DNA from: Rebecca billardiae RCC1528
Taxonomy: Eukaryota; Protista; Haptophyta
Direction: 5' to 3'
Assembly: GCA_965240325.2 (NCBI GenBank)
Contig: OZ251229.1
Coordinates: forward strand, 2,604,001-2,668,000
DNA: 64,000 bases
Made by a program: the position numbers and the translations under genes. The notes beneath the pieces were generated by a model, which was given only the letters and a program-made list of their open reading frames with translations, did not search any database and was not told where the DNA came from. Of this stretch, positions 7,952 through 40,420 are shown piece by piece (positions within the stretch are counted from its first letter, which is position 1; each line of letters begins with the position of its first letter).

Positions 7952-8872
7952 ATGGCGCCTCTGGCCGCATTCACGTGGGCCGTCCTCGTGGGCGTGCAGC
8001 TGGTGTGCACGGATGCGCTTGCTCCGCCGCCGCCCTTGCGGGGGCCGAGCGCCGTCCCGCGCCTGCGCGGTGGCGCGCGCGAGCTCGCTCGCTCGCCGCG
8101 CTCGTACGCGCCCACCCGTGTCACATACGAGGTGCCGGTGCACGAGGCACCGCTCGAGGTGCGCGACGCGTTCGTCGAGCGCGTGTACCGCACCCTCTCG
8201 CTGCAGCTGGGGGCGACGATGCTGCTGTGCTGGTACCTGATCACGTACCACCCGGGCCTCCTCGTGAACATCATGCGCGATCGCACCAAATCCCTCCTCG
8301 CGCTCTTCTCGCCGATGGTGGCCGCGATGATTGTCACGAACGCGCCCACGGCGCGGAAGACGTGGCCGACGGACCACCTTCTGCTCGCGCTGTTCACCGC
8401 GTGCGAGGGGCTCGTGCTCAGCCTGGTCACGCTCTTCGTCCCGCGCGAGATCATCTGGCGCGCCGGGCTCACCACGGCGGCGGTCGTCGGCTGGCTCTCG
8501 CTGTACGCGCGGACGACGCGGCGCGACTTCACGCGCCGAGGCTCGATGCTGCTAAACGGGCTGCTCGCGCTCACCGTGCTGCAGCTGCTGCAGCTGGTGT
8601 TCTTCCGCGGCTCGCCGATGTCGCACTCGCTCTTCTCGGCCGTGGGCGCGCTGGCCTTCGCCGGCATGCTCGTGGTGAACACGCAGCAGATCGTCGGCGG
8701 CAAGTCGACGCACGCGCAGATCGCGCCGGACGAGCACGTGCTGGCGAGCATCCTGCTGTACACCGACATCGTGGCGCTGTTCATGCACCTCGTGTCGATC
8801 ATGTCGGATGGCGGGGGCGGCGGGCGGCAGCGCGAGCGGGGCGGGGCGGGGATGCTGGACGAGCTCCTCTGA
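7952..8872 (+). CDS. Bax inhibitor-1 / Lifeguard (TMBIM) family membrane protein with signal peptide
   Basis: VRDAFVERVYRTLSLQL, several TM helices, LLALFTACEG, RDFT, NTQQIVGG, PDEHVLASILLYTDIVALF. Confidence 0.92.
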   Translation: MAPLAAFTWAVLVGVQLVCTDALAPPPPLRGPSAVPRLRGGARELARSPRSYAPTRVTYEVPVHEAPLEVRDAFVERVYRTLSLQLGATMLLCWYLITYHPGLLVNIMRDRTKSLLALFSPMVAAMIVTNAPTARKTWPTDHLLLALFTACEGLVLSLVTLFVPREIIWRAGLTTAAVVGWLSLYARTTRRDFTRRGSMLLNGLLALTVLQLLQLVFFRGSPMSHSLFSAVGALAFAGMLVVNTQQIVGGKSTHAQIAPDEHVLASILLYTDIVALFMHLVSIMSDGGGGGRQRERGGAGMLDELL

Positions 8873-35306: not shown

Positions 35307-37265
35307 CTACGGCTCCTCGGCCGCCGGCTCGACGCACGTGACCGCATCGTCGGCACCGCGCATGTCATCCACCACGATGGACGGCTGCCCGCTCCCAGGG
35401 TGGAGGACGACGAGCAGCTGAGGGCCCCGGGGAGAGGGCGGCGCCACCTGGGCGGCGGCATCGGCGTCGCGCGGTGATGCCAGCCCTGGCGGACTCGCCG
35501 CGTCGGGCGGCGGCTGGTTGGCCGCGCCCGCGCGCCGATCGCGCAGCGCGCGCGGCGAGAGCATGCGCGCGAGCGCGCTCACCCCCCGCGGCCTCTGCAC
35601 CGCGGTCGCGGGCGTGAGCAGGACATCGAGGTGCCTCGGCCGTCCGGGCGGCGTCAGTTGCGTTACGCCGGCGATGATGCCGAGCATGATTGATTGCAAG
35701 AGTAGCCAGATGCAACAGAAGCACGGCAGGAGGGCGAGGACGATCCACAGCGGGTCCGGCCTCGGCGGAGGGGCGCACAGCCGCCGACCGCGCTCCTCTT
35801 CCGCCCCCGCGCCGCCTGGCAGCAGGCTCAGCCGTCGCCTGCTGACGCAGTAGACGATTGGGCCGTCGGCCGGCGGCGCGTCGAAAATCTGCGGCGGCGG
35901 CGAGGGCGGCGACGCCACGGGGATGGCCCCAGCGAGGAGGCTGGCATAGTACAGCCGCGGGCCGCCGACGACGAGGTCGAGCACGGGCGCCGCGCCCTCC
36001 GCCGCGCTCGTGGGCACGGCGCCGAGCGAAGTCATCACAGTGCCCAGGTGTGAGGCATTGGCGATGCGTGATTCGCTGCCGCTGTCGGAGGGCAGTTGGT
36101 GCGCGCCCGCGGCCGCCGAGCTGAGCCGCGCGGATCGGCGAGCGGCGCCGTCCGGCGCGCTGAGCAGGACGACGTCGACGCGCCCGACGCCGCCGCTGTG
36201 CGCGTCCGGCGAGCCGACGAACACGTCGGGCACGCCGTCCGCGTCGAAGTCGCCCGCGCCCACCGCCGACGAGCAGAAGCGAGTGCCACTGGTCATCCCG
36301 TCGTTTCCGAGAACGTTCCGAGCGGTGATAGCGCTCGCGCGCAGCACGGCGTCGGCGCCGGGCTGCGCGGTGGCGTTGAGGAAGAGCACGAGCGCGGCGC
36401 CCGTGTTGAGCGCCCCGCGCGCGTCCCACGCGTGCGGCGCGCAGACGAGCACCTCGCTCGCGCCGTCGCCGTCGATGTCGCCGAGCCGGGCGGCTGCCCA
36501 GCCGAGCCGATCCCACGGGCGCGCGAGCGCTGCGACCGGCGCGGACGCGCTGAGCTCGTGCGCGCGCTGCACGGCGCCGCCCGCGTCGAGGAAGAGGAGG
36601 ACGACCGCCGACATCCCGTCCGGCCGCTGCCCCGACGCCAGCAGCTCGACCCGGCCGTCGCCGTCCACGTCGCCGACGCTCGCGAGCTGCGCCAAGTGTG
36701 GCAGTTGACCGAGCGAGCTGAGGTCTGCCGACACGGAGAGCGCGCGCGGAGGGCGCGAGGGCTTGGGCTCGCCGGTGCGGGCGAGGAAGATGATGTCCGC
36801 AAACGCGGGCGACGACTCGTCCGCTGAGCTCACCGCCACGTCCGGCACGCCGTCGTCGTCGAGGTCGCCGAGCGCAGCCACGGAGTGACCAAAGCCGGGG
36901 CGCCCGCCCGGAAAGTTGGGCTCAGTCGGGGAGATGCAGGTGATATGCCGGATGAGGCTGAGCGCCATGCTACTCGGGTGCTCGAGGAAGAGCACGCACG
37001 CGCCCCACGCCCACGCGCTCGACGACCCGACCACGAGGTCGTTCGCCCAGTTGCCGTCCACGTCGCCGATGCTCGTGGCGGCGCCGCGCGCCGAGAGCGT
37101 GTCCGGGGGCACCCAGCCCAACGTCGGCAGGAGCACGCGGTCGTACTGGACCAGTGGGCGGTGGTAGGACCTGACGCCCTGCAGGAGCAGCAGCGCGAGC
37201 CCCAGCCACCGCCGGGGCCGTGGCCGAGGCCGCCCGCCACCTGGCGGCGCGGCCAGCTGCCTCAT
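35307..37265 (-). CDS. FG-GAP (integrin-alpha-type beta-propeller) single-pass membrane protein
   Basis: Signal-like WLGLALLLLQG; repeats GDVDGNWANDLVVG, FGHSVAALGDLDDDGVPDVAV, GDIDGDGASEVLVCAP, GDFDADGVPDVFVGSP; TM segment LWIVLALLPCFCCIWLLL. Confidence 0.88.
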   Translation of the reverse strand: MRQLAAPPGGGRPRPRPRRWLGLALLLLQGVRSYHRPLVQYDRVLLPTLGWVPPDTLSARGAATSIGDVDGNWANDLVVGSSSAWAWGACVLFLEHPSSMALSLIRHITCISPTEPNFPGGRPGFGHSVAALGDLDDDGVPDVAVSSADESSPAFADIIFLARTGEPKPSRPPRALSVSADLSSLGQLPHLAQLASVGDVDGDGRVELLASGQRPDGMSAVVLLFLDAGGAVQRAHELSASAPVAALARPWDRLGWAAARLGDIDGDGASEVLVCAPHAWDARGALNTGAALVLFLNATAQPGADAVLRASAITARNVLGNDGMTSGTRFCSSAVGAGDFDADGVPDVFVGSPDAHSGGVGRVDVVLLSAPDGAARRSARLSSAAAGAHQLPSDSGSESRIANASHLGTVMTSLGAVPTSAAEGAAPVLDLVVGGPRLYYASLLAGAIPVASPPSPPPQIFDAPPADGPIVYCVSRRRLSLLPGGAGAEEERGRRLCAPPPRPDPLWIVLALLPCFCCIWLLLQSIMLGIIAGVTQLTPPGRPRHLDVLLTPATAVQRPRGVSALARMLSPRALRDRRAGAANQPPPDAASPPGLASPRDADAAAQVAPPSPRGPQLLVVLHPGSGQPSIVVDDMRGADDAVTCVEPAAEEP

Positions 37266-37323
37266 CGAGCGCGGGTGGGCTTGGGTGCTCACTGCTCACC
37301 GACGGGCTAACTAACGTCACACG

Positions 37324-39168
37324 ATGGCCGGCGACGACGCGTCGTGGCACGAGCTCCTGCGTGGCGCCGACGCGCTCGTGGACGAGCCGATCCCGCCGCC
37401 ATCGCGCCCTGCGGGTGTACCACCGTACGCCTCGCGCGCGGAGGCCTTCATCGAGGCCGAGCTCGACGCGCGCGGGGACAGCCATGGCGCCGAGCACGCA
37501 CGGATCGTGCGTGACAACGCACTCGCCATCCTCGCTGAGCTGCGCGCCGTCTCGGCGCCGGCCGGCTCGGCATCGCCGCCGACGGCGCAGCTCGACGAGA
37601 CGCTCTCGCGCGAGGCGAAGGTGGTTGAGCTCGCCGCGCTGCTGCACGACGTGTGCGACCACAAGTATTGTGACCCGGCGACGGATGCGGGCCGCGCGGT
37701 GATCGCTCGGCGCGATGCCTGCCTCGCCGAGGTCACGGTGGCTGACGAGGCGCGCGACGTGCTCGCGATCGTGGAGGCCGTGTCGTTCAGCCGCGAAAAG
37801 CGCGGGCAGCTCCGGCTCGACGAGCTCCCGCCCGGCGTGCGCGCGCTGCGCGACATTGTGAGCGACGCTGACAAGCTGGAGGCCATTGGCACCGTCGGGC
37901 TGCGCCGCTGCATCGACTATCGGCTGGAGAGCGCGGCCGCCGAGGGCGTCGAGCCGGCCGGCCCCGAGGCGGTGGCGCGCGACGTGGCGGCGCACTGCGA
38001 CGAGAAGCTCCTCCGGCTGCGTGACCGTTACATCCGCACCGAGCCTGGCCGCCGCCTCGCGCTCGCGCGCCACCGCGCCCTGGCCGCGTGGCGGCGCGCG
38101 TGCGCGCGCGCCGCGCGCGAGCCTCCGCTGGTGAGCTGCGTCATGTCGGTGCGTGATGGCGAGCCCTGGCTGGCCGAGGCGTTGCGCAGCGTGGGCGCGC
38201 AGGCGCACCGGCCGCTCGAGCTCTCGGTGTACGACGACGGCTCCACCGACGGCACCGCGCACGCCCTGGCGGCCGCGCGGGACTCCCTTGAGGCCTCCGG
38301 CGTGCGCGTGCTCCTCAGCTCCGGCCCGCCGTGCGCCGAGCGCGGCCGCGGCATCGGCTACGCGCAGAACCGCGCGATCGAGCAGGCGTGCGGCGAGTAC
38401 GTGTGCTTCGTCGACGCGGACGACGTGAGCGCGCCCGAGCGCGTGGCTGCGCAGCTCGCGCGCGCGCTCGACGAGGGCGTAGCGCCCGAGGACGCGCGCC
38501 TGCTGGTGGGTTCGGGCTTCTCCAGAGAACCTTTGGACGCGACCCCTCGGTACTCGCGCTGGGCGAACGGGCTGAGCGACGCGCAGCTGGTGACGCACCG
38601 GCTGCGCGAGGTGACGCTGATCCACCCGACGTGGTTCTGCGCGCGTGCCGTCCTCGAGCGCCTTGGCGGCTTCCGCGAGGACGGGCCCGGATTCCCTGAG
38701 GATCTTGACTTCTTTTATCGGCACCTGAGCGCCGGCGGCGCACTCGCGCGACTGCCTGGGCCGCTCGTCATGTGGCGATATGTGGCGAGCGGCGTGACGG
38801 TCTCGCGCGGCGTGCACTGGCGCACGATCTGGGACATGCGCGTGGCGCAGCTCGAGGGCGTGCTGCGCGACGAGCCGTGGGCCTCGGGCTTTTCCATCTG
38901 GGGCGCGGGCAAGGAGGGGCGGCGGCTATACCGCTCGCTCTCCGAGCACGCGCGTGCGCGCGTGCGCGCCTTTTGCGACGTCGACGCGCGCAAGATGGCC
39001 GCCGGGTACACGCACCACGAGAGCGGCGCGCACGTGCCCGTCGTGCACTTCCGCGAGGCGCGGGCCCCGCTGCTCCTGTGCGTGAAGGACTTTGACGGCG
39101 AGTTCGCGGCGAACCTCGCCTCGCTCGGCCTCGAGGACGGCGTGGGCTACCTCCACTTCAGCTTCTGA
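37324..39168 (+). CDS. HD-domain phosphohydrolase fused to queuosine-tRNA galactosyltransferase (QTGAL/B3GNTL1-like GT2)
   Basis: HD part: SHGAEH, LLHDVCDHKY, DADKLEAIG, HCDEKLLRL. GT2 part: VYDDGSTD, GIGYAQNRA, FVDADD, TPRYSRWAN, PTWFC, PEDLDFFYRHL, IWGAGKEGRRLYRSL, AFCDVD, LCVK, YLHFS. One intronless ORF. Confidence 0.9.
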   Translation: MAGDDASWHELLRGADALVDEPIPPPSRPAGVPPYASRAEAFIEAELDARGDSHGAEHARIVRDNALAILAELRAVSAPAGSASPPTAQLDETLSREAKVVELAALLHDVCDHKYCDPATDAGRAVIARRDACLAEVTVADEARDVLAIVEAVSFSREKRGQLRLDELPPGVRALRDIVSDADKLEAIGTVGLRRCIDYRLESAAAEGVEPAGPEAVARDVAAHCDEKLLRLRDRYIRTEPGRRLALARHRALAAWRRACARAAREPPLVSCVMSVRDGEPWLAEALRSVGAQAHRPLELSVYDDGSTDGTAHALAAARDSLEASGVRVLLSSGPPCAERGRGIGYAQNRAIEQACGEYVCFVDADDVSAPERVAAQLARALDEGVAPEDARLLVGSGFSREPLDATPRYSRWANGLSDAQLVTHRLREVTLIHPTWFCARAVLERLGGFREDGPGFPEDLDFFYRHLSAGGALARLPGPLVMWRYVASGVTVSRGVHWRTIWDMRVAQLEGVLRDEPWASGFSIWGAGKEGRRLYRSLSEHARARVRAFCDVDARKMAAGYTHHESGAHVPVVHFREARAPLLLCVKDFDGEFAANLASLGLEDGVGYLHFSF

Positions 39169-39445
39169 CGACGGACAGTTCCGGCTGCTCACTCTCCGCC
39201 GCAAGCGGTGGCGGCGACGACGACTGACAGATGGCAACGCGCTGCGACTCCTACGGCTGACGACGACGCCGACTGCATGCCAACAATATAAGAAATCGTC
39301 GTCGAAATTAAGTGACCACGATGATGCTGGCCGGAGACGGAGTGATGATCATGACGATGGTGAGATTATTTGATGGGCATTGGCGCGGAAAATTACAGTG
39401 CGCAGCAAAGTGAATATAAAACTGCTCATCCATCGATCAAGCACG

Positions 39446-40420
39446 ATGGCGGCGCGTCGCAGCCTGCGCGTCGCGTTGCTTGGCCTCACGAACAGCGGCA
39501 AGTCGACGCTCTGCAACGCGCTCGTGGGCGAGGAGGTGTCCATCGCCACGCCAAAGCGGCACACCACGCGCACCAACGTGCGCGCCATCGTCGTCGAAGG
39601 CGACACCCAGGTCGTGCTGACGGACACGCCGGGTGTGCTCGAGCTGAGCAAGGGCTCTCGGCGGGAGCGCGCGCGCAACCGCGCGGACTTTCGCCCGCTG
39701 ATCGGCGTGGCGCGTGACGCGCTGTGGGAGGCCAGGCTCCATCTCCTCGTCGTCGATGCCGCCGCCCTCGACTCGCGTCACCGCGCCGCACACACGGGCC
39801 GCGAGCTCGCGCGGCTACGCTCGCTGGCCATTGAGAGCTTGCCACCGAGAGTGCCTGCCGACAGCGCGGCCGATGCGGGCGGCGGCTCAGCACGAGCGCC
39901 GACGCCGTGCGTCCTCGCGCTGAACAAGGTGGATCGCCTGCGCGGCGTCGCGCCGGGCCACACCTCGGCGCTCGCCGACCTCGTCGCGCACGGCGGCGGC
40001 ATCGAGCCCTGCGCCACCTTCGAGATCTCGGCGCGCACGGGCGCAGGCGTGGCTGCGCTCAAGCAGTATCTGGTCGGCGCGGCGAGGCCCGGCGAGTGGG
40101 AGTTCGACGATCCGTCCCAGCGGACCGACCTCACGCTCGGCGAGCGCGCGCTCGAGCTGCTCCGCGCCGCGCTGCACGGCTCGCTGCGCCACCAGCTTGC
40201 CTACGTCTGCCGGCAGGAGGGTGCGCACTGGCGGGAGGAGGGCGCTCGCGGCCAGCTCGCGCTCGAGGTGACGCTGAGCATGCCCGGCCGGCACGAGCTC
40301 GCCATCCTCCGCTCGGCGCTCCCGGAGATCGTCGGTGCTCTGCGCCCTCGCCTGCGCACGCTCTTCGACCGCGAGGTGAGGCTCACGCTGCGCTGCCGGA
40401 TGCGCTCGAAGAGGAGCTAA
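39446..40420 (+). CDS. Era-family GTPase
   Basis: G1 GLTNSGKST, G2 KRHTTR, G3 DTPG, G4 NKVD, G5 ISARTG, and a degenerate KH-like C-terminus. Confidence 0.88.
   Translation: MAARRSLRVALLGLTNSGKSTLCNALVGEEVSIATPKRHTTRTNVRAIVVEGDTQVVLTDTPGVLELSKGSRRERARNRADFRPLIGVARDALWEARLHLLVVDAAALDSRHRAAHTGRELARLRSLAIESLPPRVPADSAADAGGGSARAPTPCVLALNKVDRLRGVAPGHTSALADLVAHGGGIEPCATFEISARTGAGVAALKQYLVGAARPGEWEFDDPSQRTDLTLGERALELLRAALHGSLRHQLAYVCRQEGAHWREEGARGQLALEVTLSMPGRHELAILRSALPEIVGALRPRLRTLFDREVRLTLRCRMRSKRS

Follow-up and report, generated by a model that had tools for sequence, protein, structure and literature searches.

An HD phosphohydrolase domain and a QTGAL-type glycosyltransferase are joined in a single gene of the haptophyte Rebecca billardiae

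A stretch of 64,000 nucleotides from the haptophyte Rebecca billardiae RCC1528 (contig OZ251229.1, positions 2,604,001 to 2,668,000; hereafter the window) carries, at positions 37324-39168, a long open reading frame (ORF) whose product reads as an HD phosphohydrolase followed by a glycosyltransferase of family GT2. The GT2 half resembles B3GNTL1, the vertebrate enzyme now called queuosine-tRNA galactosyltransferase (QTGAL). Is this ORF one gene, and if so, what could the two enzymes be doing in the same polypeptide? The discovery of QTGAL is reportedly due to Zhao et al. (2023, in Cell), and the enzymes of glycosylated queuosine are said to have been named in that year; to our knowledge, work on glycosylated queuosine has been confined almost entirely to vertebrates. 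We conclude that the single-polypeptide fusion, hereafter HD-QTGAL, is a real gene and that it combines two known families in a new domain architecture. QTGAL transfers galactose from UDP-galactose, with inversion, to the homoallylic hydroxyl of queuosine-34 (Q34) in tRNA-Tyr; as the earlier note on this DNA had held, the vertebrate enzyme stands alone and produces galactosyl-queuosine (galQ) on that tRNA (PMC11755703, PMC11705514, bioRxiv 10.64898/2026.06.28.735034).

The ORF begins at its first ATG, with an in-frame TAA located 12 nt upstream. Its GC content at codon positions 1, 2 and 3 is 0.77, 0.53 and 0.91, respectively, and the high value at the third position (~0.9) holds across both domains; no 50-codon block departs from it, not even the one that covers the HD/GT2 junction. 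The only methionines of the protein are residues 1, 274, 483, 505 and 558. The interval between M1 and M274 contains neither a stop nor another Met, and M274 falls within the first beta-strand of the GT2 domain; hence an intact transferase could not be translated alone from an AUG. Furthermore, an independent Logan assembly contains the identical fusion protein flanked by the same neighbour genes. ORF length alone proves little here because the high GC content of this genome gives rise to long chance ORFs: the genome is 70-75% GC, the window 58-80%, and long ORFs are found in all six frames around the locus. The many long spurious ORFs of the genome are what would favor reading the locus as an artefact, be it two adjacent genes, a pseudogene or a chance ORF. 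Such an artefact is effectively refuted by strong homology that runs the full length in a single frame, the third-position bias, the identical protein on the independent assembly, the lack of an internal start for the GT2 and the presence of the fusion in two other genomes, with the junction within one exon. On the opposite strand, an antisense ORF of 615 aa (36970..38817) covers most of the fusion gene; it is without homology and is a by-product of the ~74% GC content.

The two other genomes provide evidence that the fusion is conserved. The first fusion orthologue, P0002 (633 aa, Logan SRR30872636), shares 58% identity with the whole window protein at 100% coverage, and the HD/GT2 junction aligns without a gap between the two (WRRACARAAREPPLVSCVMSV versus WRARFAEVAGEPTLVSVVMTV). 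The P0002 contig (L002) carries another divergent neighbour gene, which starts ~30 nt upstream of the fusion gene; this shows that the contig is genomic DNA and rules out that it is a transcript. The Nei-Gojobori (NG86) ratio of nonsynonymous to synonymous substitution rates (dN/dS) against P0002 is 0.29 for the HD domain, 0.38 for the glycosyltransferase core and 0.45 for the C-terminal domain, values that show constraint only qualitatively as dS is near saturation. In this qualitative sense, both halves are under purifying selection. The second genome is that of Pavlovales sp. CCMP2436 (GCA_026770615.1, MU631380.1, L001 6001-11966), in which the annotated 191-aa HD protein T492DRAFT_864584 is a truncated model. 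Exon-by-exon comparison with the reference revealed same-strand collinear matches beyond that model at aa 189-202, 215-251, 251-281, 282-315 and 340-378, separated by introns and an assembly gap (a run of N at ~L001 9100-11800 hides part of the GT2). A single CCMP2436 exon reads ...WRAKFAASNNEAVLVSVVMTVRNCEP / ...VEWRAKFAASNNEAVLVSVVMTVRNCEP, that is, the C-terminal helix of the HD domain together with beta1 of the GT2. The fusion is old enough to be common to three diverged pavlovophyte-like genomes and is otherwise unseen. The layout of the protein and the flanking genes are given in Table 1.

Table 1. Coordinates in the window of the fusion gene, of the parts of its product and of the neighbouring genes.
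Feature	Position	Strand	Description or basis
HD-QTGAL fusion gene	37324..39168	+	whole intronless ORF, 614 aa plus stop, ATG start
N-terminal region, aa 1-49, acidic, two helices	37324..37470	+	alignment, model, reading of sequence
HD phosphohydrolase domain, aa 50-258	37471..38097	+	Pfam, PDB phmmer, 36-sequence alignment, Foldseek
Junction, aa 259-267, ACARAAREP	38098..38124	+	short, gap-free alignment to P0002
GT-A (GT2) catalytic core, aa 268-499	38125..38820	+	Pfam, homologue search, alignment, model
QTGAL-family C-terminal alpha/beta domain, aa 500-614	38821..39165	+	alignment, model
FG-GAP-repeat protein with C-terminal transmembrane segment, 650 aa	35307-37292	-	divergent neighbour
Era-like MMR_HSR1 GTPase	39380-40420	+	downstream neighbour
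MYND-finger protein, 726 aa	41114-43294	+	downstream neighbour

What kind of enzyme is the HD half? The region that precedes it contains a motif, ALVDxPIPPP, common to P0002, the Pavlovales protein (P0137) and stand-alone relatives, and direct reading of the N-terminal sequence revealed no apparent signal or transit peptide. The HD motifs are SHGAEH (53-58), LHDVCDHKY (107-115), SDADKLEAIG (180-189), R195 and HCDEKLL (224-230). In an alignment of 36 sequences over the first 265 residues, H54, H58, L107, H108, D109, V110, K114, D181, A182, D183 and G189 are invariant, and H113, R195, H224 and K228 are near-invariant. The H...HD...D metal ligands (H58, H108-D109 and D183) are intact and belong to the invariant set, which bears out the initial description of one intronless ORF with an intact metal site. 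The Pfam HD profile (PF01966) matched aa 89-187 below threshold, with 14.5 bits versus a cut-off of 22. The NCBIfam profile PRK10119, the YedJ equivalog, scored 20.9 bits versus a cut-off of 286, a distance indicating that the domain is a divergent relative and not a YedJ equivalog.

Structural comparisons led to the same group of enzymes. A phmmer search of the PDB matched the N-terminal part of the protein to YpgQ (5dqv, E 5e-7) and to other HD hydrolases. The two halves were modelled separately with AlphaFold; a full-length alignment prepared for structure prediction was discarded, half of each HD-only sequence having landed under the GT2. The model of the HD half is all-helical with a predicted local distance difference test (pLDDT) score of 90. 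Its best solved neighbours in Foldseek are SE1688, YpgQ, BT9727_1981, Lin1889, BH2835 and YedJ; for 2qgs, 5dqv, 5dqw and 3djb, the probability is 1.00 and the template modelling (TM) scores normalised to the target range from 0.68 to 0.79. YpgQ, which was solved with ADP bound, is the closest fold (TM 0.76, 25% identity). YpgQ and YedJ are Mn-dependent (d)NTP pyrophosphohydrolases, and the orthologous plant protein AtCN-PDE1, a cGMP phosphodiesterase, belongs to a clade described as widespread but lost in animals (PMC6692503). PenF, which has the same HD core, is an arabinonucleoside-5'-monophosphatase whose residues R140, H174 and K178 bind the substrate (PMC11592144); R195, H224 and K228 of the window protein match this trio in spacing, as read from the motifs and not from a superposition. 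A reading of the HD half as a diiron oxygenase of the MIOX/PhnZ type, parallel to the dioxygenase-fused paralogue described below, was ruled out: between the HD motif and the last Asp, the sequence lacks the two additional His ligands, and the closest structures are those of mononuclear hydrolases. Within the YpgQ/YedJ/AtCN-PDE1/PenF group, the HD half belongs to a divergent and uncharacterised branch of algae and giant viruses; its fold is not an orphan. The description of it as an orphan subfamily was thus overstated.

The nearest relatives of the HD half are stand-alone proteins of ~283 aa, ~50% identical, encoded on GC-rich marine eukaryotic contigs. The next clusters consist of 'HD superfamily hydrolase' proteins of Nucleocytoviricota and, more distantly, of fungal HD/PDEase proteins. 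Searches of the ESM Atlas and BFVD also found the nearest HD clusters in Nucleocytoviricota (Dasosvirus, Indivirus). On a JGI metagenome contig of 344 kb and 32% GC (L006), a gene of the same subfamily (8001-8732) lies near HSP70 and ~1.7 kb away from a gene for arginyl-tRNA synthetase; with these genes, a kinase and many ORFans, this contig looks like a giant virus. Several stand-alone relatives (P0004, 372 aa, and P0138-P0148) have basic N-terminal extensions that contain an AT-hook-like RKRGRP motif or a KRRRRDD motif resembling a nuclear localisation signal (NLS). To judge from their sequences, these basic N-termini suggest a nuclear location and a DNA-related role for the unfused proteins.

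Assignment of the GT2 half was more direct. Pfam Glycos_transf_2 (PF00535) matched aa 271-386 (E 7e-18), and a PDB sequence search linked the C-terminal part of the protein to SpsA-type GT2s. When aa 260-614 were searched alone, 407 homologue matches were found, and the named ones were almost all B3GNTL1 ('UDP-GlcNAc:betaGal beta-1,3-N-acetylglucosaminyltransferase-like protein 1') or 'queuosine-tRNA galactosyltransferase' from fishes, amphibians, reptiles and mammals; the vertebrate-named QTGAL matches had E values of 1e-60 to 1e-76, coverage of 97-99% and identity of 40-47%. Other homologues were found in Klebsormidium, Closterium, Pyramimonas, Chrysotila, Choristocarpus, molluscs, arthropods, nematodes, a sponge, amphioxus and Paratrimastix, a range that includes streptophyte and prasinophyte algae, haptophytes, a brown alga and invertebrates. 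The earlier view of QTGAL as chiefly a vertebrate enzyme was thus right in that the vertebrate protein is the characterised one, but homologues are widespread in algae, protists and invertebrates, and the present lineage is not special in this respect.

An alignment of 27 sequences is collinear from beta1 (PLVSCVMSV) to the terminal YLHFSF (versus YYHFS), confirming end to end the collinearity with B3GNTL1 down to the final LHFS that had been noticed by eye, and along its entire length the GT2 half shares 42-48% identity with animal QTGAL. The motifs of the catalytic core are DDGSTD (304-309), the DxD motif VDADDV (363-368), of which D364-A-D366-D367 lie in invariant or near-invariant columns, HPTWF (434-438) and PEDLDFF (458-464). 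The C-terminal domain, which presumably serves substrate recognition, aligns without large gaps over aa 500-614 and carries WGAGKEGRR (GxGxxG-like, 526-534), FCDVDARK (550-557) and LLLCVKD (583-589) ahead of the terminal motif; G529, G532, F550, D552 and V553 are invariant, and this segment is the one best conserved with P0002 (69% identity). The AlphaFold model of the GT2 half has a pLDDT of 91, and its Foldseek matches are the inverting GT-A enzymes TarS, SpsA, RmlT and TarP; the PDB copy that was searched contains no QTGAL structure.

Phylogenetic trees placed the window GT2 inside the eukaryotic family and not outside the B3GNTL1 clade, whereas bacterial GT2 outgroups lie outside that family on branches of 4-10 substitutions per site. 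The window GT2 pairs with the fusion P0002 (support 100/98); successively deeper nodes add two environmental, stand-alone algal proteins (99/95), Klebsormidium with Closterium (97/89) and finally Pyramimonas. The protein of the haptophyte Chrysotila is found apart, in a second algal group. A single haptophyte-like grouping was rejected by the approximately unbiased (AU) test with a p-AU of 8e-5, which is indicative only since the grouping was chosen after viewing the tree. The algal homologues are about equally similar to animal QTGAL (41-49%), and in a tree rooted on Metazoa the window GT2 falls beside, not within, the metazoan clade. On sequence grounds, we regard the GT2 half as a bona fide B3GNTL1/QTGAL family member and a co-orthologue of the animal enzyme.

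From the observed architecture, families, motifs and conservation, we infer an acceptor (Q-tRNA), a donor sugar, an HD substrate and a coupling of the two halves as follows. Two pre-existing genes would have been joined in the pavlovophyte lineage. The C-terminal two-thirds of the product would act as an inverting GT-A transferase with a UDP-sugar as donor, attaching the hexose to the cyclopentene-diol of Q34 in a tRNA with a GUN anticodon, either cytosolic or nuclear (tRNA-Tyr by analogy with animals). The N-terminal third, a predicted catalytically competent, YpgQ-like, metal-dependent HD phosphohydrolase acting on a free nucleotide, would hydrolyse the UDP released by the transferase and thereby ease product inhibition. 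Our confidence differs from one part to the next. Hexosylation of Q-tRNA is the most likely GT2 activity in this alga and, we believe, a somewhat probable one, because the catalytic and C-terminal domains are conserved and the clade is made up of mostly stand-alone algal enzymes. Orthologues already serve to predict galQ in insects (among PMC11755703, PMC11705514 and bioRxiv 10.64898/2026.06.28.735034) and bacterial-type Q enzymes occur in marine green algae (PMC12301720); Q glycosylation in algae is plausible and not specific to this lineage. For a bifunctional enzyme that combines Q-tRNA hexosylation with nucleotide hydrolysis by the HD domain, born by gene joining in the pavlovophyte lineage, our assessment falls just short of even. 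Hydrolysis of the UDP product is the leading guess for a coupled HD function, though in itself an unlikely one; it is drawn by analogy, since the characterised HD relatives all act on free nucleotides, the catalytic and putative substrate residues of the HD half are conserved, and the reaction involves no nucleotides other than the UDP-sugar and UDP. UDP removal and the alternative raised in the earlier note, salvage of queuosine nucleotides by the HD domain, are both speculative.

Several results weigh against this scheme. Our survey of the distribution of the fusion found it in three related genomes only, all pavlovophyte-like, which makes a Rosetta-stone argument weak: a whole-protein word search revealed no fusion beyond these three, and among the 150 best matches of an exhaustive search of 1.84 billion representatives, the window protein was the only one to span both domains. 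When JGI metagenomes were scanned with the alignment of the HD domain, 80 loci were obtained, 48 of which had at least 600 bp downstream of the HD match, and QTGAL-like sequence was found in 0/48. At the nearest stand-alone QTGAL loci (L010, L014) and at a stand-alone HD locus (L004), the two genes are not adjacent. Animals run QTGAL without this HD subfamily, indicating that the HD domain is dispensable for the chemistry; UDP can be recycled in the cytosol by ordinary kinases; and YpgQ-type enzymes are known as NTP pyrophosphohydrolases, not as UDPases. Finally, a QTGAL homologue is no guarantee of galQ, as Caenorhabditis elegans carries the gene, yet galQ was undetected on its pre-tRNA-Tyr (PMC12313893). 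The nearest QTGAL relatives of the window GT2 are stand-alone, and P0021 and P0023, the partial GT2 proteins of highest similarity, were uninformative, as both are cut or interrupted at the 5' end.

The same distribution would suit an incidental fusion, in which two unrelated housekeeping enzymes, a YpgQ/CN-PDE1-like nucleotide-sanitising or cyclic-nucleotide hydrolase and a QTGAL, became joined in an ancestral pavlovophyte but still work independently, so that their union means nothing beyond co-expression. Besides the narrow range of the fusion and the unlinked genes of its relatives, this explanation can draw on the abundance of the same HD subfamily as stand-alone proteins in marine eukaryotes and giant viruses, with no QTGAL nearby, on the NLS- or AT-hook-like N-termini of those proteins, and on the fact that QTGAL works alone in animals. 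However, the joined state was kept through ~40% sequence divergence and intron gain or loss, the junction is short and gap-free, and both halves are constrained. A second, independent fusion of a phosphoesterase to a QTGAL module (DSPc-GT2, P0390) also hints that the pairing is not random. We consider an incidental fusion somewhat unlikely, but it is the main and a serious rival.

P0390 is one of many proteins found by the exhaustive search in which a QTGAL-type module is located at the C-terminus of a longer protein; ten of these were scanned with Pfam. Three of them (P0384, P0389 and P0395) combine a Myb DNA-binding domain, a PhyH domain (2-oxoglutarate (2OG)-Fe(II) dioxygenase) and a GT2, and P0382 has the same composition without a Myb match. 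The P0384 cluster includes a protein of Prasinoderma coloniale, and the P0395 cluster has 113 members. In a tree, the dioxygenase-GT2 fusions are grouped in a separate clade (support 100) that neighbours the Chrysotila group and is distinct from the window clade; they are probably aimed at a different acceptor. Fusions of the Myb-PhyH-GT2 type are abundant in marine metagenomes, and their logic resembles the hydroxylate-then-glucosylate synthesis of base J. P0390 (833 aa, from one Logan contig) consists of a dual-specificity phosphatase (DSPc) and a QTGAL-type GT2 that is long-branched and unplaced in the tree. Together, P0390 and HD-QTGAL show that a phosphoesterase was joined to this transferase family at least twice, which keeps alive a reading in which the acceptor is prepared and then glycosylated. 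A further protein, the putative B3gntl1 protein of Paratrimastix pyriformis (P0297, KAJ4463068.1, 1561 aa), carries UVSSA_N and DUF2043 domains ahead of its GT2; this may reflect either a merged gene model or a genuine connection to transcription-coupled repair.

In the two-step reading, the HD domain would dephosphorylate a nucleotide or nucleic acid, the GT2 would glycosylate the product or a neighbouring group, and the target need not be Q34 of tRNA-Tyr. It is encouraged by the repeated placement of protist QTGAL modules behind potentially acceptor-preparing enzymes (Myb plus PhyH in P0382, P0384, P0389 and P0395, the DSP phosphatase in P0390), by the separation of the algal GT2 clade from Metazoa and by PenF, an HD enzyme of this structural group that is a nucleoside-5'-monophosphatase (PMC11592144). 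On the other hand, the window GT2 belongs to the mostly stand-alone clade and not to the dioxygenase-fused one, its similarity to vertebrate QTGAL equals that of the other algal homologues, and its C-terminal domain is fully conserved. Moreover, we know of no candidate phosphorylated acceptor, and we regard this reading as improbable.

The HD domain might also act on the tRNA itself, for instance on 2',3'-cyclic or 2'-phosphate ends from the splicing of intron-containing pre-tRNA-Tyr, so that repair of ends or junctions would be tied to Q glycosylation. The HD domains found on bacterial CCA-adding enzymes act as phosphoesterases on the ends of tRNAs, a precedent in favor of such a role. In mammals, galQ can go onto pre-tRNA-Tyr before splicing (PMC12313893), which would bring both steps close in time. 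The structural and sequence neighbours of the HD half are nevertheless all free-nucleotide enzymes, and its sequence bears no sign of an RNA-binding surface, making this last reading very improbable.

The genomic setting provides no functional hint, as the FG-GAP, Era-like GTPase and MYND neighbours have no evident tie to tRNA modification, and no tRNA genes were found in the window. The start codon of the divergent FG-GAP gene is only ~30-60 bp from the ATG of the fusion gene; the two genes must therefore share a very short bidirectional promoter region.

If the bifunctional scheme is followed to its widest form, HD-QTGAL would be a coupled two-activity machine for the glycosylation of tRNA or nucleic acid, with a phosphohydrolase that clears UDP or prepares the substrate, and one of several undescribed protist fusions (HD-, DSP-phosphatase-, Myb/2OG-dioxygenase- and UVSSA-QTGAL) through which QTGAL-type transferases would install several unknown sugar modifications on RNA or DNA in organisms other than animals; we hold this form to be quite unlikely. 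Coupling of the halves would give the alga/giant-virus HD subfamily its first functional context and would reveal a product-clearing or substrate-preparing trick unseen in the animal enzyme. If the fusion is incidental, the finding amounts to a tidy annotation of an unusual gene. In either case, a conserved algal QTGAL offers a definite gene for addressing the presence of hexosyl-Q in haptophyte-type algae, and the QTGAL modules found with oxygenase, phosphatase and DNA-binding or repair domains point to unexplored nucleic-acid sugar modifications in protists.

HD-QTGAL can be set beside four known or newly recognised systems. With vertebrate QTGAL (B3GNTL1) it has in common ~350 collinear residues, the GT-A fold, the DxD, HPTWF and PEDL motifs and the GxGxxG...FCDVD...CVK...HFS domain; however, the vertebrate enzyme is a stand-alone protein of ~330-400 aa in a metazoan subclade, whereas the algal protein has a 260-aa HD enzyme in front and its GT2 sits in an algal subclade. 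With YpgQ of Bacillus subtilis (5DQV/5DQW) and YedJ of Escherichia coli (3GW7), it shares the helical HD fold, the H...HD...D ligands and the AALxHDxxD, DADxLxAxG and HxxxKLL motifs, but identity is only ~25%, and the window HD carries an additional helical segment at its N-terminus and a glycosyltransferase at its C-terminal end. The Myb-PhyH-QTGAL-like proteins of marine green picoalgae and haptophytes likewise carry the same glycosyltransferase family C-terminal to a metalloenzyme, and differ in that the partner is an oxygenase with a DNA-binding Myb domain and the GT2 belongs to another subclade. Finally, P0390 and the window protein both place a phosphoesterase N-terminal to a QTGAL-type GT2, P0390 having a cysteine-phosphatase fold where the window protein has an HD domain.

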